A stretch of 64,000 bases of DNA from Isurus oxyrinchus. Taxonomy: Eukaryota. Below the pieces are notes generated by a model that saw only the letters and a list, made by a program, of their open reading frames with translations, did not search any database and had not been told where the DNA came from. Shown one piece after another: positions 1 to 43,850 of this stretch (position 1 is the first letter of the stretch; the number at the start of each line of letters is the position of its first letter). Location: assembly GCA_026770705.1 (NCBI GenBank), contig JANJGN010000021.1:100068001-100132000 (forward strand), given 5' to 3'. The position numbers and the translations under genes were made by a program.

Positions 1-3000
1 AAACTGATTCAGCACCTCAAACTGATACAGCACCTCAAACTGATACAGCACCTCAAACTGATTCAGCACCTCAAACTGATTCAGCACCTCAAACTGATAC
101 AGACCTTGAAAATAAAGCATTCCCTCAAACTATTACCATCCCTCAAACTAATACATTCCCTCAAACTAATAGTGTCCCTCTATATAGTACGGCCCCTCAA
201 ACTGATACAATTCCAGCATCTGATACAGCCCCTCAAACTAATACCATCCATCAAACTGATACAGTCCCTCAAAATGATACAGTCCCTCAAACTGATACAG
301 TCCCTCAAAATGATACAGCCCCTCAAAATGATACTGTCCTTCAAACTGCTACAGTCCCTCAAACTTCTACAGTCCCTCAAACTGAGACAGCCCCTCAAAC
401 TTCTACAGTCCCTCAAACTGAGACAGCCCCTCAAACTGAGACAGCCCCTCAAACTGATACAGCCCCTCAGACTGATACAGCCCCTCAGACTGACACAGTC
501 CCTCAAACTGAGACAGAACCTCACACTGAGACAGAACCTCACACTGAGACAGAACCTCACACTGAGACAGCCCATCAAACTGATAGAGATCCTCAAAATA
601 ATACTTTCCCATAAACTAATACATCCCCTCACACTAATAGAGTCCATCAATCTTGTACAGCCCCTCAAACAGATAAAATTCCACCATCTGATACAGCCCC
701 TCAAACTGATACAGAACCTCACACTGAGACAGACCCTCACACTGAGACAGCCCCTCACACTGAGACAGAACCTCACACTGAGACAGAACCTCACACTGAG
801 ACAGAACCTCACACTGAGACAGAACCTCACACTGAGACAGCCCCTCAAACTGATACAGCCCCTCAATGTTTTAGAGTCCCTCAAACAAATACCCTCCCTC
901 AAACTGATACCCTCCCTCAAACTGATACAGCCCCTCAAACTGATACAGCCCCTCAAACTGATACAGCCCCTCAACGTTTTAGAGTCCCTCAAACAAATAC
1001 CATCCCTCAAACTGATACAGCCCCTCAAACTGATACAGCCCCTCAACGTTTTAGAGTCCCTCAAACAAATACCATCCCTCAAACTGATACCCTCCCGCAA
1101 TCTGATACAGCCCCGCAATCTGATACAGCCCCGCAATCTGATACAGCCCCTCACACTGATACAGCCCCTCACACTGATACAGCCCCTCACACTGATACAG
1201 CCCCTCACACTGATACAGCCCCTCACACTGATACAGCCCCTCACACTGATACCGTCCCTCAAACTGATACTGCCCCACAATCTGATATGGTCCCACAATC
1301 TGATACGGTCCCACAACCTGATACGGTCCCACAATCTGATACCCTCCCTCAAACTGATACCGTCCCTCAAACTGATACCGTCCCTCAAACTGATACCGTC
1401 CCACAAACTGATACAGCCCCTCAAACGGATATCGTCTTTCAAACTGATACCGTCCCACAGTCTGATACCGTCCCACAATCTGATACAGTCCCACAATCTG
1501 ATACAGTCCCACAATCTGATACAGTCCCACAATCTGATACAGCCCCTCAAAGTTTTAGAGCCCCTCAAACTAATACCATCCCTCAAACTGATCCAGTCCC
1601 TCAAACTAATACCATCCCACAAACTGATACAGTCCCACAATCTGATACAGTCCCACAATCTGATACAGTCCCACAAAATGATACAGTCCCACAATCTCAT
1701 ACAGTCCCACAAACTGATACAGCCCCTCAAACTGATACAGCCCCTCAAACTAATACCATCCCTCAAACTGATCCAGTCCCTCAAACTGATACCGTCCCAC
1801 AAACTGATACCGTCCCACAATCTGATACAGTCCCACAATCTGATACAGTCCCACAATCTGATACAGTCCCACAATCTGATACCGTCCCTCAAACTGATAC
1901 AGCCCCTCAAACTGATACCGTCCCTCAAACTGATACCGTCCCTCAAACTGATACCGTCCCTCAAACTGATACCGTCCCTCAAACGGATACCGTCCCTCAA
2001 ACGGATACCGTCCCTCAAACGGATACCGTCCCTCAAACGGATATCGTCTTTCAAACTGATACCGTCCCACAGTCTGATACCGTCCCTCAAACTGATACAG
2101 TCCCACAATCTGATACAGCCCCTCAAACTGATACAGCCCCTCAAAGTTTTAGAGCCCATCAAACTAATACCATCCCTCAAACTGATACAGTCCCACAAAA
2201 TGATACAGCCCCTCAAACTGATACAGCCCCTCAAACTGATACAGCCCCTCAAACTGATACAGCCCCTCAAACTGATACAGCCCCTCAAACTGATACAGCC
2301 CCTCAAACTGATACAGCCCCTCAAAGTTTTAGAGCCCCTCAAACTAATACCATCCCTCAAACTGATCCAGTCCCTCAAACTAATACCATCCCACAATCTG
2401 ATACAGTCCCACAATCTGATACAGTCCCACAAAATGATACAGTCCCACAAAATGATACAGCCCCTCAAACTGATACAGCCCCTCAAACTGATACAGCCCC
2501 TCAAACTGATACAGCCCCTCAAACTTATCCCATCTCTCAAACTGATACAGTTCCTCAAACTGATACAGCCCCTCAAAATAATGCACTCATTCAAACTAAT
2601 ACGTCCCCTCAAACTAATACATTCCCTCAATCTAGTACAGCCCCTCAAACTGATACAATTCCATCATCTAATACAGCCCCTGAAAGTGATGAAGTCCATC
2701 AAACTGACACACTCCCTCAAACTGACACACTCCCTCAGACTGACACACTCCCTCAGACTGACACTCCCTCAAACTGCCACACTCCCTCAAACTGCCACAC
2801 TCCCTCAACCTGACACACTCCCTCAAGCTTATACAGCCCCTCAAGCTGATACAGCACTTCAAACTGCTACAGTCCCTCAATCTAACACAACCCCTCAAAA
2901 CGATACAGCACTTCAAACTGATACGGTCCCTCAAACTGATACAGTCCCTCAAAATGGCACACTCCCTCAAACTAATACCATCCCTCAAACTAATACATCC

Positions 3001-3363
3001 CCTCAAAATAATAGTCCCTCAAACTGATACAGCCCCTCAAACTGATACAGCCCCTCAAACTGATACAGACCCTCAAACTGATACAGACCCTCAAACTGAT
3101 ACAGACCCTCAATATAATAGTCCCTCAAAATAATAGTCCCTCAAACTAATGCAATTCCACCATCTAATACAGTCCCTCAAACTGATACAGTCCCTCAAAC
3201 TGATACAACACAACACCTCAAACTGATACAACACCTCAAACTGATACAGCCCCTCAAATTGATACAGTCCCTCAATCTAGTCCAGCCCCTCAAACCAATA
3301 CAGTCCCTCAAACTGATACAGCCCCTGAAACCAACACAGATCCTCAAACTAATAAATCCCTCA
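1..3363. repeat. 18-bp tandem satellite (consensus ~CCCTCAAACTGATACAGC), resumes briefly at 4248-4305
   Basis: The 18-nt period is directly visible, with variant sub-blocks (CACACTGAGACAGAAC, CCCACAATCTGATACAGT). The array runs off the left edge of the window. Confidence 0.95.
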
Positions 3364-16084: not shown

Positions 16085-19000
16085 GTGACCCACTCAAGTA
16101 GCACCAGCAAAACCCCATCAGACCCCAAACACCAGAAAAACATATCAGACCCCAAACACCAACAAAACCCATCAGACCCCAAACACCAGCAAAACCCATC
16201 AGACCCCAAACACCAGAAAAATCCATCAGACCCCAAACACCAGAAAAACCCAAGACACCCAAACACCATCAAAACCCATCAGACCCCCAAACACCAGAAA
16301 ATCACATCAGTTCCCCAAAGACCAGCGAAGCCAACAGACCCCAAACACCAACAAAACCCATCAAACCCCCAAAAACTAACAAAACCTATCAGACCCCAAA
16401 ACACCAACAAAACCTATCAGGCCCCAAACACCAGAAAAACCCATCAGAAACCAAACACCAGAAAAAACCAACAAACCCCAAACACCAGAGAAACCCATCA
16501 GACGCCCAAACTCCAGAAAAACCCATCAGACACCCAAACACCAACAAAAGCCATCAGACCCCAAAACACCAACAAAACCCATCAGACCCCCAAACACCAA
16601 CAAAACCCATCAGACCCTCAAACACCATCAAACGCCATCAGACCCTCAAACACCATCAAACCCTCAAACACCATCAAACCCCATCAGACCCCCAAACACC
16701 AACAAAACCTATCAGGCCCCAAACTCCAGAAAAACCCATCAGACACCCAAACACCAACAAAACCCATCAGACCCTCAAACACCAACAAAACCCATCTGAC
16801 ACCCAAACACCAACAAAACCCATCTGACACCCAAACACCAACAAAACCCATCAGACCCCAAAATACCAACAAAACCCATCAGACCCCCAAACACCAAAAA
16901 AACTCATTAGACCCCAAACACCAACAAAACCTATCAGGCCCCAAACTCCAGAAAAACCCATCAGACTCCCAAACACCAACAAAACCCATCAGACCCTCAA
17001 ACACCATCAAACCCCATCAGACCCTCAAACACCATCAAACCCTCAAACACCATCAAACCCATCAGACTCCCAAACACCAACAAATCCCATCAGATCGCCA
17101 AAACCTAACAAAACACATCAGACCCCCAAACACCAACAAAACCCATTAGACCCCAAACACCAACAAAACCCATCAGACACCCAAACACCAACAAAGCCCA
17201 TCTGACACCCAAACACCAACAAAACCCATCAGACCCCAAAACACCAACAAAACCCATCAGACCCCCAAACACCAACAAAAGTCATTAGACCCCAAACACC
17301 AACAAAACCTATCAGGCCCCAAACACCAGAAAAATCCATCAGAAACCAAACACCAGAAAAAACCATCAAACCCCAAACACCAGCAAAACCCAACAGACAC
17401 CCAAACACCATCAAAACCCAACAGACACCCAAACACCAGAAAATCACATCAGTTCCCCAAAGACCAGTGAAGCCAACAGACCCCAAACACCAACAAAACC
17501 CATCAGTCCCCCAAAAACTAACAAAACCTATCAGACCCCAAAACACCAGCAAAACCTATCAGACCCCCAAACACCAACAAAACCCATTAGACCCCAAACA
17601 CCAACAAAACCCATCAGACACCCAAACACCAACAAAACCCATCAGACACCCAAACACCAACAAAACCCATCAGACACCCAAACACCAACAAAACCCATCT
17701 GACACCCAAACACCAACAAAACCCATCTGACACCCAAACACAAACAAAACCCATCAGACCCCAAAACACCAACAAAACCCATCAGACCCCCAAACACCAA
17801 AAAAACTCATTAGACCCCAAACACCAACAAAACCTATCAGGCCCCAAACTCCAGAAAAACCCATCAGACACCCAAACACCAACAAAACCCATCAGACCCT
17901 CAAACACCAACAAAACCCATCTGAACCCAAACACCAACAAAACCCATCTGACACCCAAACACCAACAAAACCCATCAGACCCCAAAACACCAACAAAACC
18001 CATCAGACCCCCAAACACCAAAAAAACTCATTAGACCCCAAACACCAACAAAACCTATCAGGCCCCAAACTCCAGAAAAACCCATCAGACTCCCAAACAC
18101 CAATAAAACCCATCAGACCCTCAAACACCATCAAACCCCATCAGACCCTCAAACACCATCAAACCCTCAAACACCATCAAACCCCATCAGACCCCCAAAC
18201 ACCATCAAAACATCAGACCCCCAAACACTAACAAAACCCATCAGACCCCAAACACCAACAAAACCCATCAGACCCCCAAACACCAACAAAACCCATCAGA
18301 CCCCCAAACACCAGCAAAAATCAGCAGACCCCCAAACACCAGCAAAACCCAACAGAACCCCAAACACCAGAAAAGCACATCAGTTCCCCAAAGACCAGCG
18401 AAGGCAACAGACCCCAAACACCAACAAAACCCATCGGACCCCCAAAAACTAACAAAACCCCATCAGACCCCCAAACACCAACAAAACCCATCAGACCCCC
18501 AAAAACTAACAAAACCCATCAGACTCCCAAACACCAACAAATCCCATCAGACCCCCAAAAACTAACAAAACCCATCAGAGCCCCAAACACCAACAAAACC
18601 CATCAGACCCCCAAACACCAACAAAACCCATCAGACCCCCAAAAACTAACAAAACCCATCAGTGCCCCAAACACCAACAAAACCCATCAGAGCCCCAAAC
18701 ACCAACAAAACCCATCAGACCCCCAAAAACTAACAAAACCCATCAGAGCCCCAAACACCAACAAAACCCATCAGACCCCAAACACCAACAAAACCCATCA
18801 GACCCCAAACACCAGAAAAACCCATAAGACCACAAACACCAGAAAAACCCATAAGACCCCAAACTCCAGAAAACCCCATCAGACCCCCAAAGACCAAAAA
18901 AAATCCATCAGACCCCCAAAAACCAGCAAAACCCAAAAGACCCCCAAGTAACAGAAAAGCACATCAGTTCCCCAAAGACCAGCGAAACCAACAGACCCCA

Positions 19001-19780
19001 AAACACCAACAAAACCCATCAGACACCCAAAAACTAACAAAACCAATCAGACCCCAAAACACCAGCGAAACCCATCAGACCCCCAAACACCAGCGAAACC
19101 CATCAGACCCCAAACACCAGAAAAACCCATCAGACCTCCAAACACCAACAAAACCCATCAGACCCCAAACACCAACAAAACCCATCCGACCCCCAAACAC
19201 CAACAAAACCCCATCGGACCCCAAACACCAACAAAACCCATCAGACCCCCAAACACCAACAAAATACATTAGACCACAAACACCAACAAAACCCATCAGA
19301 CCCCCAAACACCAACAAAACCCACCAGATCTCCAAACACCAACAAAACCCCATCGGATTCCAAAAACCAACAAAACCCCATCAGACCCCAAACACCAACA
19401 AAATCCATCAGACCCCCAAACACCAACAAAACCCATCAGACCCCCAAACACCAACAAAACCCATCAGACCCCCAAACACCAACAAAACCCCATCAGACCC
19501 CAAACACCAACAAAATCCATCAGACCCCCAAACACCAACAAAACCCCATCAGACCCCAAACACCAACAAAATCCATCAGACCCCCAAACACCAACAAAAC
19601 CCATCAGACCCACAAACACCAGCAAAACCCATCAGACCCCCAAACACCAACAAAACCCATCAGACCCCCAAACACCAGCAAAACCCATCAGACCCCCAAA
19701 CACCAGCAAAACCCAGCAGACCCCCAAACACCAACAAAACCCAGCAGACCCATTCTCAAGAACCAGCAAACCCAATGTGC
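16085..19780. repeat. 28-29-bp satellite (CAGACCCCCAAACACCAACAAAACCCAT), intronic
   Basis: Direct periodicity with strong C/A strand bias. Decayed copies extend to ~19990 and also appear at 14140-14245. Confidence 0.95.
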
Positions 19781-20665
19781 AAACATCAGCAAACACTGGT
19801 CAAATCCATGTCCAAACATCAATGTAATCCATCAGACCCACTTCCGAAACACCGAAAACCTGTCAGACCCAGACATCGACAAAATATCAGAAGTACCGCA
19901 CCCGCACCCCTCCCCCAAAGACCACAAAAACCCACCCCCCAAAACATTAGCAAAACCAAGCACACCAACATCCTAAATAGCAGCAAAATCCACAAGGGCA
20001 CAGGAACTGGAGGAGGCTATTTCCTCGAGTCTGTTCCACCATTCAATGGGATCATGGCTGGTCTGTGGCCTAACTCCACATGGACCCGTCTTGGTCCCAT
20101 ATTCCTTACTTTTGAGATTTAGAGATTTCTCTTAACCAACGGTATTAACAGTTGATTGAGCATCAGTCGCCTTTGGAGGAAAAGAGTTCCAAGCTTTTAC
20201 CACCCTTAGAAGTGTTTCTAAGTTTCACTCTCAAGAGGCCTGGTTCTAATTTTTAGCCTGCAAACACCCAGCAATTCAGAATCCCATGGGAGTGACAACA
20301 TTAAATCCCAGTAACCAATTTCAGCAGAAACTCTGGGCACCTCAACTCCCTCAAAGGAAGTTGAGCAGCTGGCATGAGGTCAAGGCCAGGATGAGTTGTT
20401 TCCAGATGTTTCTACACACCAACCACCCCCATCCTTCACTCCCCACACGGTAGCTCCACCCTCAGTACCATACACAAACAGCCATCTCCTGAAGCCCAGT
20501 CTCAAAGCTCGGTGTTGAATTGTATGAGCTGCTCTTTAGTGATTATACAGGGAGCAACAGACACTCAGGTCACATTCCACCCACCAGATTGTACAGTTAA
20601 CACCAGCTGTAATATCCCAGTTAGAAGGAATCTGCTCCCACTATTGATCAAACACTATTCATACC

Positions 20666-20700
20666 TCAGAAACTGGGCGAGGAATCCCCTGTACCAGAAG
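20666..20700 (-). CDS. MHC class I exon 7 (cytoplasmic tail end, TSGTGDSSPSF*)
   Basis: Acceptor CTCTCCTTCCTTTAACAG, Ser-rich tail, TGA at 20668-20666 followed by G|GTATGA donor. Confidence 0.8.
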
Positions 20701-23700
20701 CTGTTAAAGGAAGGAGAGGCATTTAAAAACTGTTCATTATCAGAGAGATAGGAACAGAGCCAGTGCACGATATACAAAGGCAGAGAGACAGAGGGAGAGA
20801 GTCAGAAAAATCACAGAACTAGAGAAAGAATGGGTTATATATACAGATAAAAGAACACAGAAATGGACAGACACAAAGAGTCACGGAATGAGACAAATAC
20901 AAAAAGCAAGATAAACAGAGGAGAGAGAGATTCAGAGAGGTGAGAGGTGGGGGGTGACAAACACACAAACAGAGAGAGAGAAACACAGGGAAAGGAATAG
21001 ACACACACACACATGCAGACACACACACAGACACAGATAGCAATGAGGTATTAAGTTTATTTGACACAGAATGGAGAATGATTCACACAGTTACACACAG
21101 ATCCAGAGGATGTTTGAGGATCAGCTTACTCTGTGTAGGATTGTAGCCGCTCTTCCCTCTCACTGTAAAACAAGGAATGTTCAGTGAGTGATGAGAGACT
21201 GACAGAAAATCAGAGAGAAGAGGGACTGGAACTCTGAGTGAAAGAGAGAGATGGACCCTCCTTCACACTGAGACCCTCACTCCTGCCCAGACCCGAGCCC
21301 CTCGCTCCCGCCCTGACCCGAGCCCCTCACCAATCCTGGGACCTCCCCCTCTACCATGAGACCCTCACCACCCCGCACCTCGGGGCCCTTCCACCCACTC
21401 TCCCATCGACCTGTGACCTTACACAACGCCCTGAGCCACTGAACCCCGAGACCCTTCACCCAACCCTGAGGAACAGCCCAGCAACCTGGGCCATTCCTTC
21501 ATAAACTAAGATCCGCTCCCCTACAGCCTGAGCCATCCCTACCCTGAGACCCTCCCCCAAACACGTAGGTTCCTCCCCCCACACTGAGCCCCTCACAATC
21601 CCCCACGAGACCTCCCACCCACCCCCACACTGGGCGACCCTCTCTCAACCCCTCCAAAACCCTGAACCGCCAGTGAGGGGCTACCATTGTCTTTCCAATT
21701 CCTACCTTTCCTCTTATAGACGACAACAGCCACAACGATGAGAGCGATGATCCCGATGATCCCGAGGATAATCCCAACCGGAACAGGAACCTGGGACTGA
21801 GACTTTGGTTCTGTGATATTAAAGTGAGAGTGAGTGAGGGTGTGAGAGAGCTAGAGGGAGAGATGGAGAGGAAGAGAGAGAGAATGAGAGAGAGAGAGCA
21901 CGAGTGGGAGGGAATGAATGAGAGAAAGAGAGAATCAGTGAGAAAATCAGGATTATGTCGGGTTATAAGGCACAAAAACAGGCCATTCAGCCCGAACAGT
22001 CCATGCTGGTGTTTATGCTCCATTCCTGCCTCCTCCCATCTTTCCTCATCACTTTCCATCATCATAACCCTCTGTTCCCTTCTCTCTCATGTAGGTGTCC
22101 AGCTTCCCCTTAAACTCGTCCACACTATCTGCTCCAACCACTCCCTGTGGTACTGAGCTCCACATTCTCACTGCTCTCTGGGCAAAGGAGTTTCTTCTGA
22201 ATTCCCTTTTAGATTTTGTGGTCACTATTTTATATCGATGGCTCCTAGAGGAAGAAAATCCTCTTTGTATCGACTTTATTGAAACATTTTCATCATTTTA
22301 AAGATATTGGGTCACGCTTCAGCCTGATTTTTCAAGAGAAAAGAGACCCAACCTATGAATCCTTTCCCAATATGTATACCCACGCATTTCTGGGATCATC
22401 ATTGTGAATCTTCTCTGCACCCTCTCCAATGCCTCAATATCATTGTTACAATATCATGACCAGAACTGCACACAGTACTATAAGGATGCTCTAACTAAGG
22501 TTCAACACAGGTTTAGCATCGCTTCCCTACTTTTCAATTCTATCCCTCCAGAATTAAAACTTAGTGCTGGATTGTTTTTATCTTTTATGTCCTTCCTAAC
22601 CTGCGGTGGAAATTCTACTGATTGATGTATTTCTACTCCCAGATTCCTTTGTTCCTCTATCCCATCCAGACTCGCAGCTTCCAAGTAAGAATTCACCTCC
22701 CTATTCTTCCTACCAAAATATACTTGCTCTCATCTGTGTTGAACTTCATTTGCTATTTATACAAGTTTATTACTGTCCTCCTGTAATGTGCAGCAGTCCT
22801 CCTCAGTATTGATTCTCCATCCCAATCTGGTGTCATCCATGAATTTAGAAATTTTGTTTTTATTTCCAAATGGTTTATGTAAATTGTGAACAGCAGTGGT
22901 CCCAGCACTGATCCATGTGGAACACCATTACCCATCTTCTGACACTTTGAATAACTCTCCTTTACTCCCTCTCTCTGCTTTCTCTCTTGAACCCAGCTAG
23001 CAATCCATTCTGTCACTTATCCCCTGGCTCCACATTCTCTGACTCTATTATGGGGCAGCTTATCAGAGGTCTTTTAAAAATCCAGATAAATTAAAGTTAC
23101 TGCATCATTCTTGTATACTCTCTCTCTCTCAAAAATAGAATAAGGTTGGCAAAAAAAGATTTCCCTTTTTAAAATCCATGTTGACCATTCATATACATAT
23201 TCTTTCTTTCTAGATGTTCTTCTATTCTCTCCTTTAGGAGGGATTACATTATTTTTCCAATCATCAACGTTAAGCTGACTGATATTAAATTCCAGGTTAC
23301 ACTGGGCCCTATCACACTCTTATATCCCAGGACAGAATTAATCCTATCCCACTGTAACATTCCAGGATACACTGGATCCTGTCATACTGTACTTCCCTAT
23401 ATTTCACAGGGTCCTGCCATACTGTCCTATCCCAGGATTCACGGGGTCTGTCATACCAGCCTGTCCCGATTCACTGGCTTCTGTTATACTGTATTAACCT
23501 AGGAATCACAGGGTCCTGTCACCTACACTATCCCAGGATTCAGTGCTTTACATTATGCTGTACCATCCCAGGATTCACTGGTTTTTGTCATACTGTACTA
23601 TGCATGGATTCACTGGTTCCTCTCATACTATATATCCCAGGATACACTGGTTGCTGTAATACTGCACTATCCCACAAATCCATGCTTTCTGATGTACCAT

Positions 23701-26700
23701 ACTATTCCAGGATTAACAGGGTCCGGTCAGATTATATGGATTCAATGGTTACAATCATGTTGTACTATCCCACTATTCACTGCTTTCTGTCGTACTGTAT
23801 GATCACAGGATCACAAGGTCCTGTCATACTGTACTGTCCAAGGGTTCACTGGTTTCTGTCATACTGTATTATCCCAGGACTCACAGGTTTCTGTCATACT
23901 GTACTGTCCTAAGGTTCACTGGTTTCTGTCATACTCTACTGTCCAAGGGTTCGTTAGTTTCTGTCCTACTGTACTATCCTGTGATTCACAGCATCCTGTC
24001 ATACTGTACTATCTCAGGGTTCACTAGTTACTGTCATACTGTACTGTCCAAGGGTTAACTGGTTTCTGTCATGCTGTATTATCCCAGGATTCACTGGTTT
24101 CTGTCATACTGTACTGTCCAAGGGTTCACTCATTTATGTCATACTGTAGTGTCCAAGGGTTCACTGATTTCTGTCATACTGTACTGTCCAAGGGTTCACT
24201 GCTTTCTGTCATACTGTACTATCCCAGGATTCACTGGTTTCTGTCATACTGTACTGTCCAAGGGTTCAGTGGTTTCTGTCATACTGTACTGTCCAAGGGT
24301 TCATTGTTTTCTGTCCTACTGTACTATCCTATAATTCACAGCTTCTTGTCATACTGTACTATTCCAGGGTTCACTGGGTTCTGACATTCTGTACTAATTG
24401 GGATTCACTGGTTCCTGTCATGCTGTATTATCCCAAGTTTTAGAGGGTCCTATCATACTGCACTATACCAGTATTCTCAGACGTCTGTCATACTGAACTA
24501 TCCCAGGATTCACTGGTTTCTGTCATATTGTACTGTCCAAGGGTTCATTGATTTCTGTCCTACTGTACTATCCTATAGTTCACAGCATCCTGTCATACTG
24601 TACTATCCCAGGGTTCACTAGGTTCTGCCATTCTGTACTGTCCCAGGATTCACTGGTTCCAGTCATGCTGTACTATCCCAGGAGTCAGAGGGCCCTATCA
24701 TACTACACTATCCCAGTATACTCTGATTTCTGTCATACTGAAGTATCTCAGGATTCACTGGGTCCTGTCATACTATGCTATCTCAGGATTAACTGGTTGC
24801 TGTGATACTGGACTATCCCATGAATCACTGGTTTCTGATGTACTGTACTATTCCAGAATTCACAGGGTGCTGTCATAGTGTACTATCCCAGGATTCATTG
24901 CTTTCTGTCATACTGTACTATCCCAGGGTTCACAAGGTCCTGTCAATAATGTACTATCTCAGGCTTCACTCATTCCTGTCACACTGTACTAGCCCAGGAT
25001 CAACAGGGTCCTGTCATACTGTACTGTCCCAGGATTCACTGGATTCTGTCATACTGTACCATCCTACTGTTCATGGTATCCTGCCAGACTGTACTCTCCC
25101 AGGATTCATTGGTTTATGTCATACTATACTATTGTATGATTCATGGTGTCCAGTAATACTGTAATATTCCAGGATTCACTGGGTCCTGTGTTCTCTGTAC
25201 TAGCCCAAGATTCATGCAGTCCTGTCATACTACACTAACCCAGGGTTCTCAAGGTCCTGTCACATTGTATTATCCCAGGATTCACAGGGTCCTGTCATAT
25301 TGGACTATCCCATGATTCACAGATTTCTATCATACTCTGTTTTCCCAGGATGCACAGGGTCCTGCCATACTTTACTCTCTCAGGATTCACTGGTTTCTGT
25401 CATACTGCACTATCATATGATTCACAGGGTCCTGTCATACTGTACTATCCCAGCATTCACTGGGTACTGTGTTTATTGCATTAGTTTCATGAGGTCCTGT
25501 CATTCTACACTACCCCAGGAATCACAGCGTCCTGTCATAATATACTATCGCAGGATTCACTGCTTTCTGCCATACTGTGCTATCTCAGGATTCTCAAGGT
25601 CCTGTCATTCTGTACTATCCCACTGGGTCCTGTCTTACTATACTATCTCGTGATTAACTGGTTGCTGTGATACTGTACTGTCCCAGGGTTCACTGGTTTC
25701 TGACATACTGTATTTTCCCAGGATGCACAGGGTGCTGTAATACAGTATTGTTCCAAGGTCACTGGTTTTGGTCATACTGTACTACCCTATTATTCATGGG
25801 GTCCTGTAATACTATACTCTTCCAGGATTCACTGGGTCCTGTGTTTTCTGCACTAGCCCAAAATTCATGAGGTCCTGTCATACTCCACTACCCCAGGATA
25901 CTCAAGGTCCTGTCACACTGTACTATCCCAGGAATCATGTGGTCCTTTACTATTGTACTATTTTAGGATTAACTGTTTTATTGAGGAAGAAATATGTGCA
26001 CAGATAATCTATCTCCACTTGGAGAGGCAAGGTTTGATCAGTCATCATGGCTTTGTCAGAGGGAGGCCATGCCTAACAAATTTGATTGAATTTTTTGAGG
26101 AAGTGACCAGAGTGGATAGGGAGCAGCTGTTCCCCTTAGTTGAAGGGTCAGTCACAAGTGGACATAAGTTCAAGGTATGGGGCAGGAGGTTTAGGGGGGA
26201 TGTGAGGGAAAATGTTTTTACCCGGAGAGTGGTGACGGTCTGAAATGCACTGCATGGGAGGGTGGTGGAGGCGGGTTGCCTCACATCTTTTAAAAGGTAC
26301 CTGGGTGAGCACTTAGCACGTCATAACATTCAAGGCTATGGGCCAAGTGCTGGTAAATGGGATTAGGTAAGTAGGTCAGGTGTTTCAGGTGCAGGCTCGA
26401 TGGGCCGAAGGGACACTTATGCACTGTGTGATTCTGTGATACACTACCCCAGGATTCTCAAGGTCCTGTCACACTGTACGATCCCAGGATTCATGAGGTC
26501 CTTTAATACTGTACTATTCCAGGATTCACAGGGTCCTGCCATACTGCACTATCCCAGGGTTCACTGGTTTCTGTCATGCTGTAGTATTCCAGGATTCATT
26601 GATTTCTGCCATACTGTGCTATCCCAGGATTCTCAAGGTTACGTCATTCTGTACTATCCCAGGATTCATGGGGTCCTGTGTTTCCTGTACGAGCCCAGAA

Positions 26701-29700
26701 TTCATGGTGTCCTATCATACTGTACTATCCCGGGATTGACGGGGTCCTGTCAAACTGTACTATCCGAGAATTCACTGCTTTCTGTCATATGGTACTATCC
26801 CAGGATTCACTGGTTTCTGTCATACTGCAGCAGCCCAGGATTCAGTGTCCTGACATACTATAAAATCCCAAGATTCACTGATATCAGTCATACTGTACTA
26901 TCCCCGAATTCACAGGGTCCTGTCATACTGTAGTATTCCAGGATTCACTGGTTTCTCTCATACTGCACCATCCCAGGATTCACTGGTTCCTGTTATAATG
27001 TACTATCCCAGGTTTCATCAGGTCCTGTCATGCTGTACTATCCCAGGATACTCTGTCTTGGTTACTCTAGCACAGGCGTGATGACTGTGACTCACTAAAA
27101 GTGAATATTAATTTCCCTCTCTCTGGATCCTGGGCCTCAGCCTGTCCTGGGCTGACAGCTCAGCACTGACCCTCCCTCCTGTGACCCTGGTCTGAGGCTG
27201 GGTTCTCTCTAACAGTGAGAAACAGTCTTACCATAAATCACCACCTTCTCCTCCTCCAGCCCACTGTGTTCCACCCGACAGGAATACTCAGCCTGATCCT
27301 CTGGATCAAACTCCATCCATTTCCGGATCTGGTAGGTCCTGTCATGATTGGGTAAGATCCCAGTGGACAGGGTCTCTTCGATCAACACTCCGTCTCTCCA
27401 CAGAGTCATCTCGATGGCTTGAGGGTAAAACCCGGTGACGACACAGGACAGCTGGTTAGAATCACCCAGACGGATAAAGAACACGACGGGGGCAACTGAG
27501 AGATAAAGAAAGAGGAGTCAGTACAGGAACCTCGAGATAGAGACTCCCAGGCAGCAACCCATTCACCGATTCCCAGTCAACCCGGCACTCACCGACCCTC
27601 ACACCCCCTCACTCACCGACCCTCACACCCCCTCACTCACCAAGCCTCACACCCCCTCACTCACTGACCCTCACACCCCCTCACTCACCGACCCTCACAC
27701 CCCCTCACTCACCGACCCTCACACCTCCTCACTCACCGACCCTCACACCCCCTCACTCACCGACCCTCATACCCCCTCACTCACCGACCCTCACACCCCC
27801 TCACTCACCGACCCTCATACCCCCTCCCTCACCGACTCTCACACCCCCTCTCACCGACCCTCACACCTCCTCACTCACCGACCCTCACACCCCCTCACTC
27901 ACCGACCCTCACACCCCCTCACTCACCGACCCTCACACCCCCTCACTCACTGACCCTCACACCCCCTCACTCACTGACCCTCACACCCCCTCACTCACCG
28001 ACCCTCGTACCCCCTCACTCACCGACCCTCACACCCCCTCAGTCACCGACTCTCACACCCCCTCACTCACCGACCCTCACACCCCCTCACTCACCGACCC
28101 TCACACCCCCTCACTCACCGACTCTCACACCCCCTCACTCACCGACACTCAGACCCCCTTACTCACTGACCCTCACACCTCCTCACTCACCGACCCTCAC
28201 AACCCCTCACTCACCGACCCTCACACCCCCTCACTCACCGACCCTCACACTTGCTCACTCACTGACCCTCACACCCCCTCACTCACTGACCCTCACACCC
28301 CCTCACTCACCGACCCTCACACACCCTCACTCACCGATTCTCAATCCCCCCTCACTCACCGACCCTCAGACCCCCTCACTCACCGACTCTCAGTCCCCCC
28401 CTCACTCACTGACTCTCAGTCCCCCCCTCACTCACTGACTCTCAGTCCCCCTCTCACTCAATGACTCTCAGTCCCTCCCTCACTCACCGATTCTCAGTCC
28501 CCCCCTCACTCACCGACTCTCAGTCCCCCCCTCACTCACCGACTCTCAGTCCCCCCCTCACTGACCAACTCTCAATCCCCCCCTCACTCACCGACTCTCT
28601 GTCCCCCCCTCACTCACCGACACTCACACCCCCTCACTCACCGACTCTCAGTCCCCCCCTCACTCACCGACTCTCAGTCCCACCCTCACTCACCGACTCT
28701 CAGTCCCACCCTCACTCACCGACCCTCAGTCCCTCCTCATTCACCGACTCTCATCCCACCCTCACTCACCGACTCTCAGTCCCCCTCACTCACCGCCTCT
28801 CAGTCCCCCTCTCACTCACCGACTCTCAGCTCCCCTCTCACTCACCGACCCTCAGTCCTCCCCTCACTCACCGACTCTCAGTCCCCCCCTCACTCACCGA
28901 CTCTCAGTTCCCCCCGTGACTCACCGACTCTCAGTCCACCCCTCACTCACCGACTCTCAGCTCCCGCCTCACTCACCAACTCTCAGTTCCCCCCCTCACT
29001 CACCAACTCTCAGTCCCCCCCTTCAGTCACCGTCTTTCAGTCCCCCCCTCACTCACCGACTCTCAGTCCCCCCCTCACTCACCGACTCTCAGCCCCTCCT
29101 CACTCACCGACTCTCAGTCCCTCCTCACTCACCGACTCTCATTCCCCCCTCACTCACCGACTCTCAGAGCCCCCCTCACTCACCGAATCTCAGTTTCCCC
29201 CACTCACTCACCGACTCTAAGTTCTCTCTGTCCATACTCCAGGTACTTCCTCAGCCATTCGATACATTCCTCCTCCAGGTAATGTTTCCATCGCTGTTTG
29301 TCAAACTTGTACTGGTCCCAGGTGTTTTTGAAGTTCTCTCCCCATGGGACCGGGGTCACCCACACCATGTGCTGTGGGTCGAAGCTGATAAAATCTCCTC
29401 CGTTCCATCCCCTCTGGTGGATCCCCCTCCTGGTTCCATCATCGTTCAGGTCACAGCCGATCAACATCTGGTGTGTGTGGATTCCTGTCAATCAAACACA
29501 TGGAGCCAATCCGACACTGTCCTACAAGGAGACTCCACCCATCGCACACTCAGCCAATCAGCCTCTGGCTCCCATATCCCAATCCACTCCTGGTTACTCC
29601 CCATCCCAGACACTCTCAATCCACAGGAAGAGACCAAGTGGTGGGACAACAAGGACTCACCTCCCGACTGGTTGGTCCGGGCCATGAGGATCGGAATATA

Positions 29701-32147
29701 CTTTTTGATATGCTGCTCCTGTTCCTGAGCAAGCATCGTCTTCCGCTCCCAGGACTCACGCCCCTCACTCTCCACCATCCATTGCTCCCGGGGGATCAAC
29801 ACTTTCCCATCGCTGTCATACATAACAAACTGAACGCCATCCACATAACCGACAGCTACAAACTCCGGAATACCAGGAATCGGAGTCACGCCGGTGAGGA
29901 AATACCGGAGAGTGTGAGAGCCTGAAACACAGAGAGAGAAAGAGAGACATCAGGACATGTACCCCTAACACCAACCCCAAAACCCCAACTCAACAGAAAG
30001 GTAGACCCACCTCACCCTGATTTCCTTCTCCAATTCCCCACAGGTGACCTGAAGCCTGTGATCTCCCATCCTGACACTTCACTGATCCGAGCTTCCCAGT
30101 ATCCAGCCATTGGTTCTTTAGCCAAACATTTTAAATCAGTGCCCTCTGGTTCTCAATCCTTCCTCCAGTCAGGACAGCTTCCCTCGATCTACTCTGTCAA
30201 GAACCTAATGATTCTGAACACAGCCATCAAATCTCCTCTCAACCTCCTCCCCCAAGAGAAAATCCCCAGCTTCTACAGTCTGTTAAAGTAATTAATGTTC
30301 CTCATTCCAGAAACCATTGTGGAAAATCTTTTCTGCATCCTCTCTAATGCCATCACATCCTTCCTAAAGTGTGGTGCTGAGAGCTGGAGACAGTACTCTA
30401 GTTGAGGCTAAACCAGTGTTTTACACTGATTTATCATAACTTCCTTACTCTGCACTCTATGTCTCTATTTATAAACACTAGAATCCCGGGTCCTTTTTTA
30501 ACCACTTTTTCTACCTGCCCTGCCACCTTCAATTTGTGCACATGTAGCCCCAGCTCCCACTGTTCCTGTACACCCTTTAGAATTGCATCCTTTATTTCTC
30601 ACTAAAATGGATCACTTCACATCTTTCAGCATTAAATTTTAACAGCTGCTTGTCAGCCCATTTCACAAACCCCACTATGTTCTGTTGAAGTCTATCACTG
30701 TCCCCCTCACAGTTTACAACACTTCCAACTGCTGTGTTGTCTGCAAATTGTGTCCTGTATGCAAAAGTCCACCTCATATCTGTATAATATTTATTTATTA
30801 CACATATATATAGCCTGCAGATACTGATCCTTGGGGTGGTTAGAATCTGGGATGCAATGTCTGAGACCGTGATGGAGATTTAATTTAGGATTGCAAGAGA
30901 GAATTGGATAATTATCAGAAGAGAAAAGAAGTGAGAAAAAATGGGAAGAAGGTGAAGGAATGGGTCTAGCTGAGTGGCGCTGGCAGAGAGCCAGCAGAGA
31001 CACAACCTGCCAAATAACCTCCTCCTGTTCTGTAATGGTTCCATAATTCTATTGAGAGGGCAAATAAGCGGCAAAACTGTGACAGATGGAGCTCAGCAGG
31101 GGCAAATGCGAGGTTAGACACTTAGATTTAATGAATAATATTGGAATATTTTCGATATGTCTAAACTTCTATATTGTTGTTTGTTACTGCACAGGAAAGA
31201 AAGTGGAAAGAATAGGAAAGCAGAATGAGATAATGCTCTGGTACAGAGGGATCTGGGTGTCCTTGTACATGAGTCACTAAAAGTCAGCGTGCAGGTACAG
31301 CAACTGATGAGGAAGGCAAATGGAATAGCAGCCTTTATTGCAAGGAGGATTGAGTATTAAAATACAAAAGTCTTGCTAGAAATCTACAGGGCATTGTTGC
31401 GACTGCATTTCAAGTACTGTGTACAGTTTTGGTATCCTCATTAAAGGAGGAATATACTTGCATTGGAGACATTCAGAGAAGCTTCTTTAAGCTGGTTCGT
31501 GGGATAAAGGGCTGAGGAAAAGGTAAAGCAGGTTAGGCCTATAATCGTAGTTTAAAGAATGAGAGATGATCTTATTGAAATGAATAAGATTGTGAAGGGT
31601 CCTGACAGAGTAGACAGACTCAAGGAGCTACACGCTCCTCCTGTCCCAATAACCCAATATTAATCACCCTCCCCGCTCTCCCTCTCCAGCCATATGTCGC
31701 TGTGTTTCACTTTCACCATGGTCTTTCTCACTCTCCAGCCACAGTACCCACTCTAGCACAAACCCTCTCACACTCTATCATTCACGTACCCAGAGTTAAT
31801 GCCCCAATACCCAGACTGGCATTGCCCCCTCACACCCTATCATTCACTTACCCAGAGTTAATGCCCCAATACCCAGACTGGCATTGCCCCCTCACACCCT
31901 ATCATTCACTTACACAGGGTTAATGCCCCAGTACCCAGACTGGCATTGCCCCTCTCAGACCCCATTACGCACTGACCCAAGATTAATGCCCCAATACCCG
32001 GACTGTCATAGCCCCTCTCAGAACCTATCACTCACTGGCCCAGGATTAATGCCCCAATACCCAGACAGGCATTGCCCCTCTCACACCCCAATACTCACCT
32101 GCAGACACCTCTCCACACAGAAGGACCAGCACTATCAGTCCAATCAT
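20666..32147 (-). CDS. MHC class I alpha chain, probably non-classical (7 coding exons, 339 aa)
   Basis: Exon lengths 49+261+273+264+105+33+35 = 1020 nt form an open frame from ATG to TGA. All introns are GT-AG and phase 1. The layout is leader, alpha1, alpha2, Ig-C1 alpha3, TM and two cytoplasmic exons. Confidence 0.95.
21130..21162 (-). CDS. MHC class I exon 6 (cytoplasmic, VRGKSGYNPTQ)
   Basis: 33-nt exon, TTTTACAG| ... A|GTAAGC, carrying the conserved class I cytoplasmic Tyr. Confidence 0.88.
21706..21810 (-). CDS. MHC class I exon 5 (connecting peptide + TM, EPKSQSQVPVPVGIILGIIGIIALIVVAVVVYKRK)
   Basis: ATCACAG| ... G|GTAGGA, 105 nt, with a hydrophobic helix and basic stop-transfer. 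Not captured in frame by the ORF track. Confidence 0.92.
21950..23295 (-). mobile_element. Decayed CR1 LINE fragment (intron 4)
   Basis: NGVPHGSVLGPLLFTIYIN, EEQRNLGVEIH and GIELKSREAMLNL remnants. Confidence 0.85.
23295..27055. repeat. 35-bp satellite (CTGTCATACTGTACTATCCCAGGATTCACTGGTTT) in intron 4
   Basis: Period 35 (e.g. 24206 and 24241), diverged at the ends, interrupted by a CR1 piece. Confidence 0.92.
25980..26440 (+). mobile_element. Internally deleted CR1 fragment inserted in the 35-bp satellite
   Basis: HGFVRGRPCLTNLIEFFEEVT is joined directly to RVDREQLFPLVEGSVTSGHKFKV and the CR1 3' end. Confidence 0.85.
27232..27495 (-). CDS. MHC class I exon 4 (alpha3, Ig C1-set)
   Basis: LSCVVTGFYPQAIEMTLWRDG..PNHDRTYQ..YSCRVEHSGL, 264 nt, CTCAG| ... 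G|GTAAGA. Confidence 0.97.
27585..29220 (-). repeat. Splice-donor-derived minisatellite filling intron 3 (24-nt block ~27585-28330; 25-26-nt block ~28330-29211)
   Basis: The minus-strand unit (A/G)GTCG|GTGAGTGAGGGGG.. matches the real exon 3/intron 3 junction AGAGTCG|GTGAGTGAG. Confidence 0.93.
29212..29484 (-). CDS. MHC class I exon 3 (alpha2)
   Basis: GIHTHQMLIGCDL..DFISFD..W..WD..HYLEEECIEWLRKYLEYG with the C101/C164 pair, 273 nt. Confidence 0.97.
29661..29921 (-). CDS. MHC class I exon 2 (alpha1)
   Basis: GSHTLRYFLTGVTPIPGIPEFVAVGYVDGVQFVMYDSD..PREQWM..WER..RTNQSG with the N86 glycosylation site, 261 nt. Confidence 0.97.
30040..30780 (-). mobile_element. Decayed CR1 fragment (intron 1)
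   Basis: FADNTAVGSVVNCEGD..KFNAERCEVIHF remnants. Confidence 0.8.
30830..31620 (+). mobile_element. Decayed CR1 fragments (intron 1)
   Basis: QRDLGVLVHESLKVSVQVQQ, KANG..AFIAR and YCVQFW remnants. Confidence 0.75.
31745..32098. repeat. ~61-62-bp tandem repeat at the 5' end of intron 1 (~5.5 copies)
   Basis: TTAATGCCCCAATACCCAGACTGGCATTGCCCC recurs at ~62-nt spacing and abuts the exon 1 donor. Confidence 0.85.
32099..32147 (-). CDS. MHC class I exon 1 (signal peptide MIGLIVLVLLCGEVSA)
   Basis: ACAATG start context, hydrophobic core, VSA|G cleavage site, G|GTGAGT donor. Phase 1 joins to GSH of alpha1. Confidence 0.92.
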
Positions 32148-39238: not shown

Positions 39239-39957
39239 AGTGCTGAATTTTATGATTTGTCTATGACACAGGATTCATATTGGGCTCTGATTACAGAATC
39301 ATCCATCCTGTAACTGATCAAGGTTTTACAGATCCCTTTGTATCGATCATTTAGGGTCTAATCCCATGTAACCTTTACCAATCTCTGTCCTTAGCTCAGT
39401 GAGGTGTCTCCTTGGGTAGAAAATAATAACGGTAGTACACAGTTAATGATGAAATACGTAGAACACTTCTCTCAGTGATGGCATTATCCCAGTTATAATA
39501 CTTGCCTCTTCTCCAGTGCATCAACATCCTTTTTGTCATAAGGAGACCAGAACTGAGTGTTTTATAAAGAAGTTCTAGATAAGTTGAATATTAATTCTAG
39601 AAATGAACTTTAGTGCTTTATTTGCATTTTTATGATCTTGATAACCTGCAGTGTCACTTCACATTATTTGTGAATCTGTACCACTGAACCCAGTCAGATG
39701 CATTTTCAAAGATATATTTGAGAACATTATTCTTGCAACAAAAATACACCACCTCATAATTATCTATATTGAAAATAATTTGCCATTTTAATACCCATTA
39801 TTCACATTTATTCATTGTTTTTTGTGTCTTCATGTATTTGTTGCATTCTTCCTCTTATCAAATGTACTCTCACTTTGGACTTGTCTGCCTGGACTGAGAC
39901 AAGGAGGATATTTGATCAGCAATTTCCAATCTCTTTTCCCTTCTCTCTCTTACACAG

Positions 39958-40861
39958 TTAATTTAGTGGCGATAACGATCCTGTCCCAGAGACAGTGTGG
40001 TCTCTCCACCTGTACAACTCACTACCTGGTGGCTATGGCAATGGCAGGTCTGTTGTTCATTATCCCTGCACTCATAGTGTTATGGATCAGTTCTTATTAT
40101 TTCCCAAGATCTTTCCTGGAAATCACCTTTGTGTGTAGTGTGGTCATGATCCTGCTTTATGCAGCTGGAGACTGTTTTGTCTGGTTCACCGTCCTTTATC
40201 CTTTGATCGATTTGTGGTCATTTGTTACCAGAAGCTGAAAACAAAATATTGCACTGAGAGAACTGTGGCTGTGGTTCTATCAACAACCTGAACTCTGCCC
40301 TGTTTCAAAAACATTCCCATGTACTTTACTTTTGAACCTGGAGAGATAATCGACAATGTTCCCTGGTTCTGTTATCTAAAGCCAAGCTATTATGCTGACC
40401 CTGCATGGGTAGCATTTGACTTATTTGATAAGATTTTATCCCCATTGCTCCCATGTGCTTTAATTCTGTTGCTCAATGCTCTGACAGTCAGATATATTTT
40501 AGTGACCAGTCGAGTCCATAAGGGACTGAGGGGTCAGAACAAGGGAGAGAATCGCAGTGACCCAGAGATGGAGAGCAGAAGGAAGTCTGTGATTTTACTC
40601 TTCACCATATCTGGCAGCTTCATACTCCTGTGGCTTTTATATGTTGTAAATTTCTTATTTTGTATCCTTACGGGAATTAATACCAAATATTTCAATTATT
40701 CTTCATATTTCTTTTGAGAAGCTGGAATTATGTTTGTGGAGTTAAGATACTGCACATTTATTTATGGAGTGACTCAGTCCAAGTTCAGGGAGCAGATCAA
40801 CAGTGCGGTGAAATATCTGGTTACATCAATTATTCATTTAATTAGTAAACAAAACAACTGA
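39958..40861 (+). pseudogene. GPR139/GPR142-like rhodopsin-class GPCR pseudogene (main exon)
   Basis: An acceptor ..TTACACAG| precedes (V)NLVAITILSQRQCGLSTCTTHYLVAMA..DCFVWFTV/FDRFVVICYQKLKTKYCTERT..PLLPCALILLLNALTVRYIL..DPEMESRRKSVILLFTISGSFILLW..FIYGVTQSKFREQ. There is a frameshift at ~40195 and stops at ~40289 and 40715. Confidence 0.88.
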
Positions 40862-42857: not shown

Positions 42858-43850
42858 ACAGACTGGTAAAGGTGCCAGGACAGGTCAATAAGATGGGTAA
42901 GAAGGTATATAGCATGCTTTCCTTTATTGGCCGAAGCATAGAGCAGAGTGGTTATGCTGGAACTGTATACAACACTAGATAAAGCAGAGTGGTTATGCTG
43001 GAACTGTATACAACACTAGATAGAGCAGAGTGGTTTTGCTGGAACTGTATACAACACTAGATAAAGCAGAGTGGTTATGCTGGAACTGTATACAACACTA
43101 GATAGAGCAGAGTGGTTATGCTGGAACTGTATACAACACTATATAGAGCAGAGTGGTTATGCTGGAACTGTATACAACACTGGATAGAGCAGAGTGGTTA
43201 TTGCTGGAACTGTATACAACACTGGATAGAGCAGAGTGGTTATGCTGGAACTGTATACAACATTAGATAGAGTTTAGTGCTTATGCTACAGCTACAGACA
43301 ACATGAAATAGACTAAAGCAGAAACTGCAAACAGTCTGGTCAGCACATTACAGGAAAAGATGTGACTGCACTGGAGGGATTGAAGAGGAGATTGTTTAAT
43401 AGCTGCCAGGACTGGAGAGTATTCGCTTTGAGGAAAGACCGGAGAGGATGGGGTGAAATTTTCTGGAGGGAGGAGGGGGCCAAGGGAGATTTAATTGTAT
43501 AAAATTATGACTGGCCATGATGGCATTAATAGGTTGACCTATTTAGCTTAACAGAGGGGGCAAAAAACAGGGGGCACAGATTTAAAGAAGCATCAAAGGG
43601 ACACTGACGAAACGATTGTTTACCCAGAGAGTCTTCAGGACCTGGAAATCACTACCTGAAAGAGCAGGAGAGGTGGAAACTCTCACCACATTTAAGAAAT
43701 TCTTGGACATCAACTTGAGGAGCTGTGATCTGCAGGGCTGCGGGCCAAGTGCAGGAAGGTGAGATTGGGCTGGGGAGCTCCTCATTACTCAGCAGGAACA
43801 CAATGGGCCAAATGGCCTCGTTCTGAGTGGTCAATTTTCTTAAGATTCAA
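42858..43850 (+). mobile_element. CR1 3' fragment paralogous to 15373-16085, containing a 41-bp tandem expansion (42940-43290)
   Basis: It shares private mutations with the copy at 15373-16085 (e.g. GCTACAGCTACAGACAACATGA.ATAGACTAAAGCAGAAACTGCAAACAGTCTGG). Confidence 0.88.

Follow-up and report, generated by a model that had tools for sequence, protein, structure and literature searches.

How a gene settles on one splice donor when the intron behind it consists almost wholly of copies of that donor is the question raised by a locus of the shark Isurus oxyrinchus. The window, as used here, is a stretch of 64,000 nucleotides (nt) of contig JANJGN010000021.1 (assembly GCA_026770705.1, positions 100,068,001 to 100,132,000 of the forward strand), and all positions below are counted from its first letter. 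[quoted passage not shown] Intron 3 of this gene, which lies between the alpha2 and alpha3 exons, is a minisatellite whose first monomer includes the end of the alpha2 exon and the authentic donor, and whose later monomers repeat that junction. The dominant assembled transcript uses the first copy. With a probability of about 0.7, the array is a tolerated minisatellite produced by slippage or unequal exchange, the pseudo-donors of which are silent as the most upstream donor wins.

The intron 3 array and its repeated donors

Tandem Repeats Finder (TRF) reports an array at 27586-29186 with a period of 24 nt, 64.4 copies, 88% matches and a score of 1821. A 17-nt core, GTCGGTGAGTGAGGGGG, is matched 61 times when up to two mismatches are allowed, always on the minus (sense) strand and always within 27604-29215, compared to 0.05 matches expected from shuffles. 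When the parse is anchored on this core, the array resolves into 66 contiguous head-to-tail units of 22-28 nt that occupy about 95% of the intron, and just the final ~90 nt are unique. From the exon inward, the order is:

29219-29192, minus strand: unit 1, in which TAGAGTCG and GTGAGTGAGTGGGGGAAACT meet at the exon/intron junction; this is the authentic donor, and the first G of the intron is at 29211.
29191-28343, minus strand: units 2-34 (family A), 24-27 nt and mostly 26 nt, with the modal unit GAGAGTCGGTGAGTGAGGGGGGGACT.
28342-27601, minus strand: units 35-65 (family B), 24 nt, with the modal unit GAGGGTCGGTGAGTGAGGGGGTGT in 12 identical copies.
27600-27496, minus strand: decayed unit 66 and then the unique end of the intron, in which a branch-point-like TACTGAC and a pyrimidine tract precede the acceptor AG at 27497-27496.

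The units are thus tandem, intronic and within the 10-100 nt range of minisatellites, and the first monomer contains both the exon end and the authentic donor, as in the junction-spanning minisatellites known from human genes. An earlier note on this DNA, made from the letters alone, had described nearly the whole intron as 60-65 tandem copies of its own exon end and donor, with a 25-26-nt unit beside the exon, a 24-nt unit further in and a G-run in each; the TRF count and the unit parse agree with this description.

The units resemble the exon over about 11 nt before the cut, with 10 of 11 positions shared between the exon (ACTTAGAGTCG) and the unit (ACTGAGAGTCG). Unit 1 is 4 edits from the modal unit of family A and 8 from that of family B. 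The mean pairwise edit distance is 3.2 within the exon-proximal family A and 1.9 within family B, and the greater homogeneity of family B suggests that it is the younger expansion. Because family A is exon-like and diverged and family B is homogeneous, a stepwise expansion is proposed, in which an old array was followed by a younger 24-nt one. The sense strand of intron 3 is 55% G with a GC skew of +0.77, and the composition profile is likewise strongly skewed. Runs of at least 3 G number 99, including 48 of at least 5 G, and every unit has one.

The donor itself is repeated with high fidelity. The exact 9-mer TCG/GTGAGT (the slash marks the cut between exon and intron) occurs 47 times, once as the authentic donor and 46 times as a pseudo-site, and 45 of the 47 are identical over -3 to +8 and share a computed U1 duplex energy of -10.2 kcal/mol; the corresponding values are -10.8 for the alpha1 donor and -8.0 for the alpha3 donor. 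A weaker donor-like site, TGA/GTGAGG, lies 4 nt past the main donor site in 52 units. Unit 1 reads GTGAGTGAGTGG at 29201-29211 and holds a second full donor, TGA/GTGAGT, 4 nt downstream of the authentic one; use of this site would shift the frame, and none is seen in the transcript contigs.

Any departure from the first donor meets a stop codon:

29204-29206, minus strand: in-frame TGA in the alpha2 frame (GTC GGT GAG TGA); the open reading frame (ORF) 29204..29491 ends in RELRVGE and then the stop.

The TGA is in frame because the alpha2 exon is of phase 1 and is followed by GTGAGTGA. Retention of the intron start or use of a later donor therefore yields a protein that ends three codons after alpha2, as the earlier note had read from the codons.

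Several features by which the array could act on RNA were looked for. Neither AATAAA nor ATTAAA occurs in intron 3, so no premature poly(A) signal of these types is present as a target for U1 'telescripting'. The first 320 nt of the intron RNA fold with a z-score of -2.4 and an almost unpaired centroid, and no meaningful structure able to mask pseudo-donors is seen in this segment. Canonical G-quadruplex (G4) motifs, defined as four tracts of at least three G with loops of up to 7 nt, are absent from intron 3; with loops of up to 12 nt, 12 motifs are found, and the G7 runs could still form G4s with 1-19-1 loops. A scan of 20500-31000 against Rfam returned no family. An antisense ORF of 152 aa traverses the array; a protein search with it gave no match at E <= 1e-5, a result of little weight as the query is of low complexity. 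Recursive splicing is ruled out, as the units have no recurrent AG/GT juxtaposition.

Donor use in transcripts and identity of the gene

The transcript evidence consists of assembled Logan contigs, to which rare isoforms, isoforms depleted by nonsense-mediated decay (NMD), expression level and array length are invisible. Two RNA-type runs of independent studies, X9 (study P4) and X11 (study P5), supply contigs that differ from the window at 1-2 positions per ~800 nt. Contigs of both runs join 29212 directly to 27495 with GT..AG ends, and this is the only joint of the dominant assembled isoform across intron 3; the most upstream donor is thus the one in use, as the earlier note had held. Pseudo-donor use is not found in the assembled contigs of these two runs, and contigs of this kind drop rare forms. 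The same joints settle the borders: positions 29212 and 27495 stand as the last base of alpha2 and the first base of alpha3, and the extent of the intron is corrected to 1716 nt. The leader, alpha1, alpha3 and transmembrane (TM) exons are likewise joined canonically in transcript contigs, which gives the following gene:

Ends at 32099, minus strand: leader exon, at a loose end of a transcript contig.
32098-29922, minus strand: intron 1.
29921-29661, minus strand: alpha1 exon.
29660-29485, minus strand: intron 2, 176 nt.
29484-29212, minus strand: alpha2 exon, 273 nt, ending in AGAGTCG at 29212; joints in X9 and X11 are 29660 to 29483(+1) and 29212 to 27495.
29211-27496, minus strand: intron 3, 1716 nt, with borders fixed by transcript joints.
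27495-27232, minus strand: alpha3 exon (Ig C1-set), placed by contig pieces and loose ends, with 95% identity to P0167.
27231-21811, minus strand: intron 4.
Starts at 21810, minus strand: TM exon, spliced from alpha3, with a transcript loose end placed at 21781-21810.

The gene belongs to class I by its alpha1/alpha2/alpha3/TM exon architecture, by its similarity to class I proteins and by a spliced transcript in two studies. The best Protein Data Bank match of the alpha2 translation is the nurse shark class I structure 6LUP (E 1.8e-27). When the exons are compared to proteins singly, each on its own, their identity is 95-97% to Carcharodon carcharias XP_041068578.1 (95.6% for the alpha2 exon) and 77-93% to two proteins of Cetorhinus maximus. 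A further model of Carcharodon carcharias, P0272 / XP_041068271.1 (147 aa, same 90% cluster), is named 'beta-2-microglobulin-like' and begins at alpha3 (MVVAPVV...). In fact, what this model represents is the alpha3, TM and cytoplasmic portion of a class I gene, and its start at alpha3 suggests a split gene model of the kind expected from a very long intron 3.

Origin and persistence of the array

Minisatellites are the rule in this window. Arrays of tandem units 18, 28, 35, 41 and 62 nt long cover 33.5 kb of the 64 kb (52%), and the gene itself holds a second array that starts at a donor:

32098-31763, minus strand: junction-spanning array of intron 1, 62-nt unit, 5.2 copies (TRF), beginning at the first base of the intron.
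1-3363: 18-nt unit, 187 copies.
16102-19751: 28-nt unit, 133 copies.
23351-27049: 35-nt unit, about 90 copies, 3.7 kb, inside intron 4.
42938-43287: 41-nt unit, 8.5 copies.
43875-63994: 28-nt unit, 720 copies, 20 kb.

The monomers of the intron 1 array show the leader donor in decay (CAG/GTGAGT, CCA/GTGAGT, TCA/GTGCGT, TGT/GTAAGT, TGG/GTAAGT and TGG/GTACGT), and the leader exon is spliced from the first copy in transcripts, as at intron 3. That one gene has two arrays seeded at junctions, with units unrelated to each other, points to a mutational tendency and not to a one-off design.

Other observations touch these repeats and their surroundings. The two 28-nt arrays share their unit and flank the gene region. 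The intron after the TM exon (intron 5; 21266-21700, minus strand) is G-rich, with a sense GC skew of about +0.53, and has degenerate repeats with GTGAGGGTCTCAGTG; these are similar to the intron 3 unit of 24 nt (GTGAGGGTCGGTGAG), and the intron 1 unit likewise contains related GTGTGAGGGGG motifs. Intron 4 retains a retroelement remnant, a reverse-transcriptase fragment (22753-23016, minus strand; Pfam RVT_1, below cut-off at E 8e-4) that lies between the TM exon and the 35-nt array. Outside the gene, two adjacent ORFs of 138 and 132 aa (39822-40717, plus strand) resemble pieces of rhodopsin-family seven-transmembrane (7TM) receptors, the second with a Pfam 7tm_1 match of E 1.7e-5 that is below the gathering score; a pseudogene or a gene with a frameshift may lie here.

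Variation among the intron 3 units bears on how the array has been kept. The commonest variants are CpG transitions that weaken the donor at -2/-1 (TCA in 8 units, TTG in 3). Variants are copied within an array and are not independent events; hence, types of variant are counted rather than cells. By types, the GTGAGT core shows 7 in 12 columns compared to 20 in 18 columns elsewhere, a difference that is not significant, and the spectrum looks neutral as judged from the units of this one array.

The favoured origin is a tolerated slippage product. A segment of ~26 nt, which took in ~11 bases at the exon end along with the donor GTGAGTGAG and the G-run behind it, would have been duplicated tandemly into the intron, and replication slippage or unequal exchange would then have expanded it to 66 units, with the 24-nt sub-family as a later addition. 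Such duplications would be seeded where the sequence right after a donor is G-rich and internally repetitive, and those extending deeper into exons would be purged by selection. The first donor would be chosen, as in human F7, since it is the sole donor that adjoins a defined exon and is transcribed first (5'-to-3' priority and exon definition). Leaky use of a later donor would keep GGT GAG TGA in frame, truncate the protein right after alpha2 and expose the RNA to removal by NMD, and so would be harmless. If leaky RNAs are stopped and removed in this way and the upstream donor wins, the array needs no function to persist. A slippage product is favoured because minisatellites make up 52% of the window, because intron 1 of the same gene shares the junction-spanning design and because the variant spectrum looks neutral. 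The earlier note had offered neutral slippage as one of two options, and it is the one that fits best.

The other option was that the array controls dosage or splicing: its pseudo-donors would rival the authentic donor, or would act as a sink for U1 small nuclear ribonucleoprotein (snRNP), and a fraction of transcripts that depends on copy number would end in NMD or as a truncated product of alpha1 and alpha2. The 46 pseudo-donors do match the real one over -3 to +6 with equal computed U1 energy, and the stop that would follow their use comes directly after alpha2. The assembled transcripts of two studies show the canonical joint only, however, and decay of donors at CpG sites is tolerated. 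An alpha1-alpha2 fragment that lacks alpha3 would moreover not bind beta2-microglobulin. Precedents among human genes fall on both sides: proximal pseudo-sites of the IFI6 and CBS arrays are used constitutively, as cited in PMC1557585, whereas the identical downstream sites of F7 do not compete even at a consensus value of 91 (PMC1557585). Control by decoy donors or a U1 sink is thus improbable; with no assembled transcript on a pseudo-donor and no significant conservation of the core, this reading is unsupported, not refuted. A benefit that comes from the G-runs and U1 sites themselves is doubtful. The heterogeneous nuclear ribonucleoproteins (hnRNPs) F/H act by looping out introns, and on the ~99 G-runs they would loop out intron 3 and reinforce the upstream donor, with the array as an intronic splicing enhancer or a scaffold that compacts the intron; alternatively, R-loops or G4s would make the array a hotspot of recombination or gene conversion between the peptide-binding alpha1/alpha2 exons, which are 176 nt apart, and alpha3. 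The strong G bias and the long and short G-runs of the sense strand suit such a benefit, as do related G-rich GTGAGGG motifs in introns 1 and 5, and hnRNP F/H sites within introns reportedly stimulate the splicing of enlarged ones (PMC1326234). By contrast, the intron has just the 12 long-loop G4 motifs and none of canonical type, its RNA has no stable fold at a z-score of -2.4, and G-runs stand behind every pseudo-donor, so that alone they cannot mark the first one.

An assembly artefact, either in the presence of the array or in its length, is highly improbable. Long near-identical arrays do assemble poorly, and no contig spans the full 1.6 kb; yet at each end of the array, contigs of independent runs connect it to unique sequence (X5, record 6, at 29138-29586; X7, records 11 and 12, at 27481-27701), words of the array are abundant in these runs, no assembly gap is involved, and the ordered mosaic of variants with two sub-families is unlike a collapsed consensus. 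Relative to the window, contigs of X5 and X7 skip and step back within the array, a pattern that copy-number differences among individuals could leave but that de Bruijn assembly of near-identical repeats, or paralogous arrays, can produce as well. Some observations weigh against a tolerated slippage product. In X7, which bears a second organism label and covers 27520-28663, array words reach depths of 10,000-48,000 compared to 7-230 on exons, so array-like words are 100-1000 times as deep as the flanking exons; unit copies are therefore far more numerous than one 66-unit locus supplies. By cells, the GTGAGT core varies at ~2% compared to ~5% in the remaining unit, which could hint at constraint. 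Rare NMD-sensitive isoforms, which contigs would not show, may exist as well, and persistence of the array across paralogues or species could reflect selection rather than inheritance and expansion. Such points would suit an alpha2-donor satellite that is a conserved and functionally kept trait of the lamnid class I family, in which a long array of U1 and hnRNP-H binding sites might tune mature mRNA output through slow or leaky splicing and NMD, or form an R-loop-prone boundary of recombination or gene conversion that sets the peptide-binding exons apart from alpha3-TM; this proposal is quite doubtful. A tolerated slippage product remains the preferred account of intron 3.

Comparison with known junction-spanning minisatellites

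Minisatellites that span a splice junction serve as natural experiments on how a 5' splice site is chosen. Human cases reach ~25 pseudo-sites at most, and the shark gene, in which a strong donor recurs in 46 exact copies, is an extreme test case: the use of the first copy by its main transcript extends the rule that the most upstream donor wins across jawed vertebrates. For the genomics of the MHC, a practical consequence is that such arrays can vastly enlarge intron 3 and cause gene models to be split. If the array were selected, it would add a new layer to class I regulation; nothing found requires this.

A search of the literature on repeats in shark class I introns found nothing relevant. 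Immunoglobulin switch regions and G-rich hypervariable minisatellites have short G-rich units and extreme strand asymmetry, with the G-rich strand as the non-template. The likeness of the shark array to these is compositional only, and the array is without a canonical G4 motif.

Closer relatives are the minisatellites whose first monomer lies across an exon-intron boundary, which are described from human F7, CBS, IFI6, LMNB2 and PDGF (PMC1557585). The array of F7 IVS7 (intron 7) has a 37-bp unit in 5-9 copies, and only the first of its identical donors is used (Borensztajn et al. 2006, PMC1557585). In a set of 50 F7 constructs, the pseudo-sites become functional once the upstream donor is mutated (PMC1557585); with this donor in place, they do not compete with it, and an increase of their consensus value to 91 makes no difference (PMC1557585). 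The remaining human arrays, as cited in PMC1557585, differ in how strictly the first donor is kept. Intron 2 of IFI6 (6-16) has 25 pseudo-sites, and the authentic and two proximal donors are used (Turri 1995); IVS13 of CBS has a 31-bp unit in 15-20 copies, and the authentic donor is used along with the first two pseudo-sites (Yang 2000; Lievers 2001). The authentic donor alone is used in LMNB2 (100 bp, 10-15 copies) and in intron 4 of PDGF (81 bp, 16-18 copies).

The shark array is most like that of F7 intron 7: both have a boundary-spanning first monomer and identical pseudo-donors, and in both the most upstream donor alone appears in normal transcripts. It differs from F7 in having about 10 times the copies (66 units with 46 exact pseudo-donors), shorter units, a share of 95% of its intron and a stronger donor (GTGAGT compared to GTGGGT). 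The arrays of IFI6 and CBS also repeat a splice donor, but use of proximal pseudo-sites in the shark gene would meet a stop, and none is seen in the assembled transcripts. LMNB2 and PDGF share with the shark gene a repeated junction of which, in the cited account, the authentic donor alone is used; by contrast, their units are much longer, fewer in number and not described as notably G-rich in that text. The shark array is thus a further example of a known structure, with more pseudo-donors than any listed in PMC1557585.

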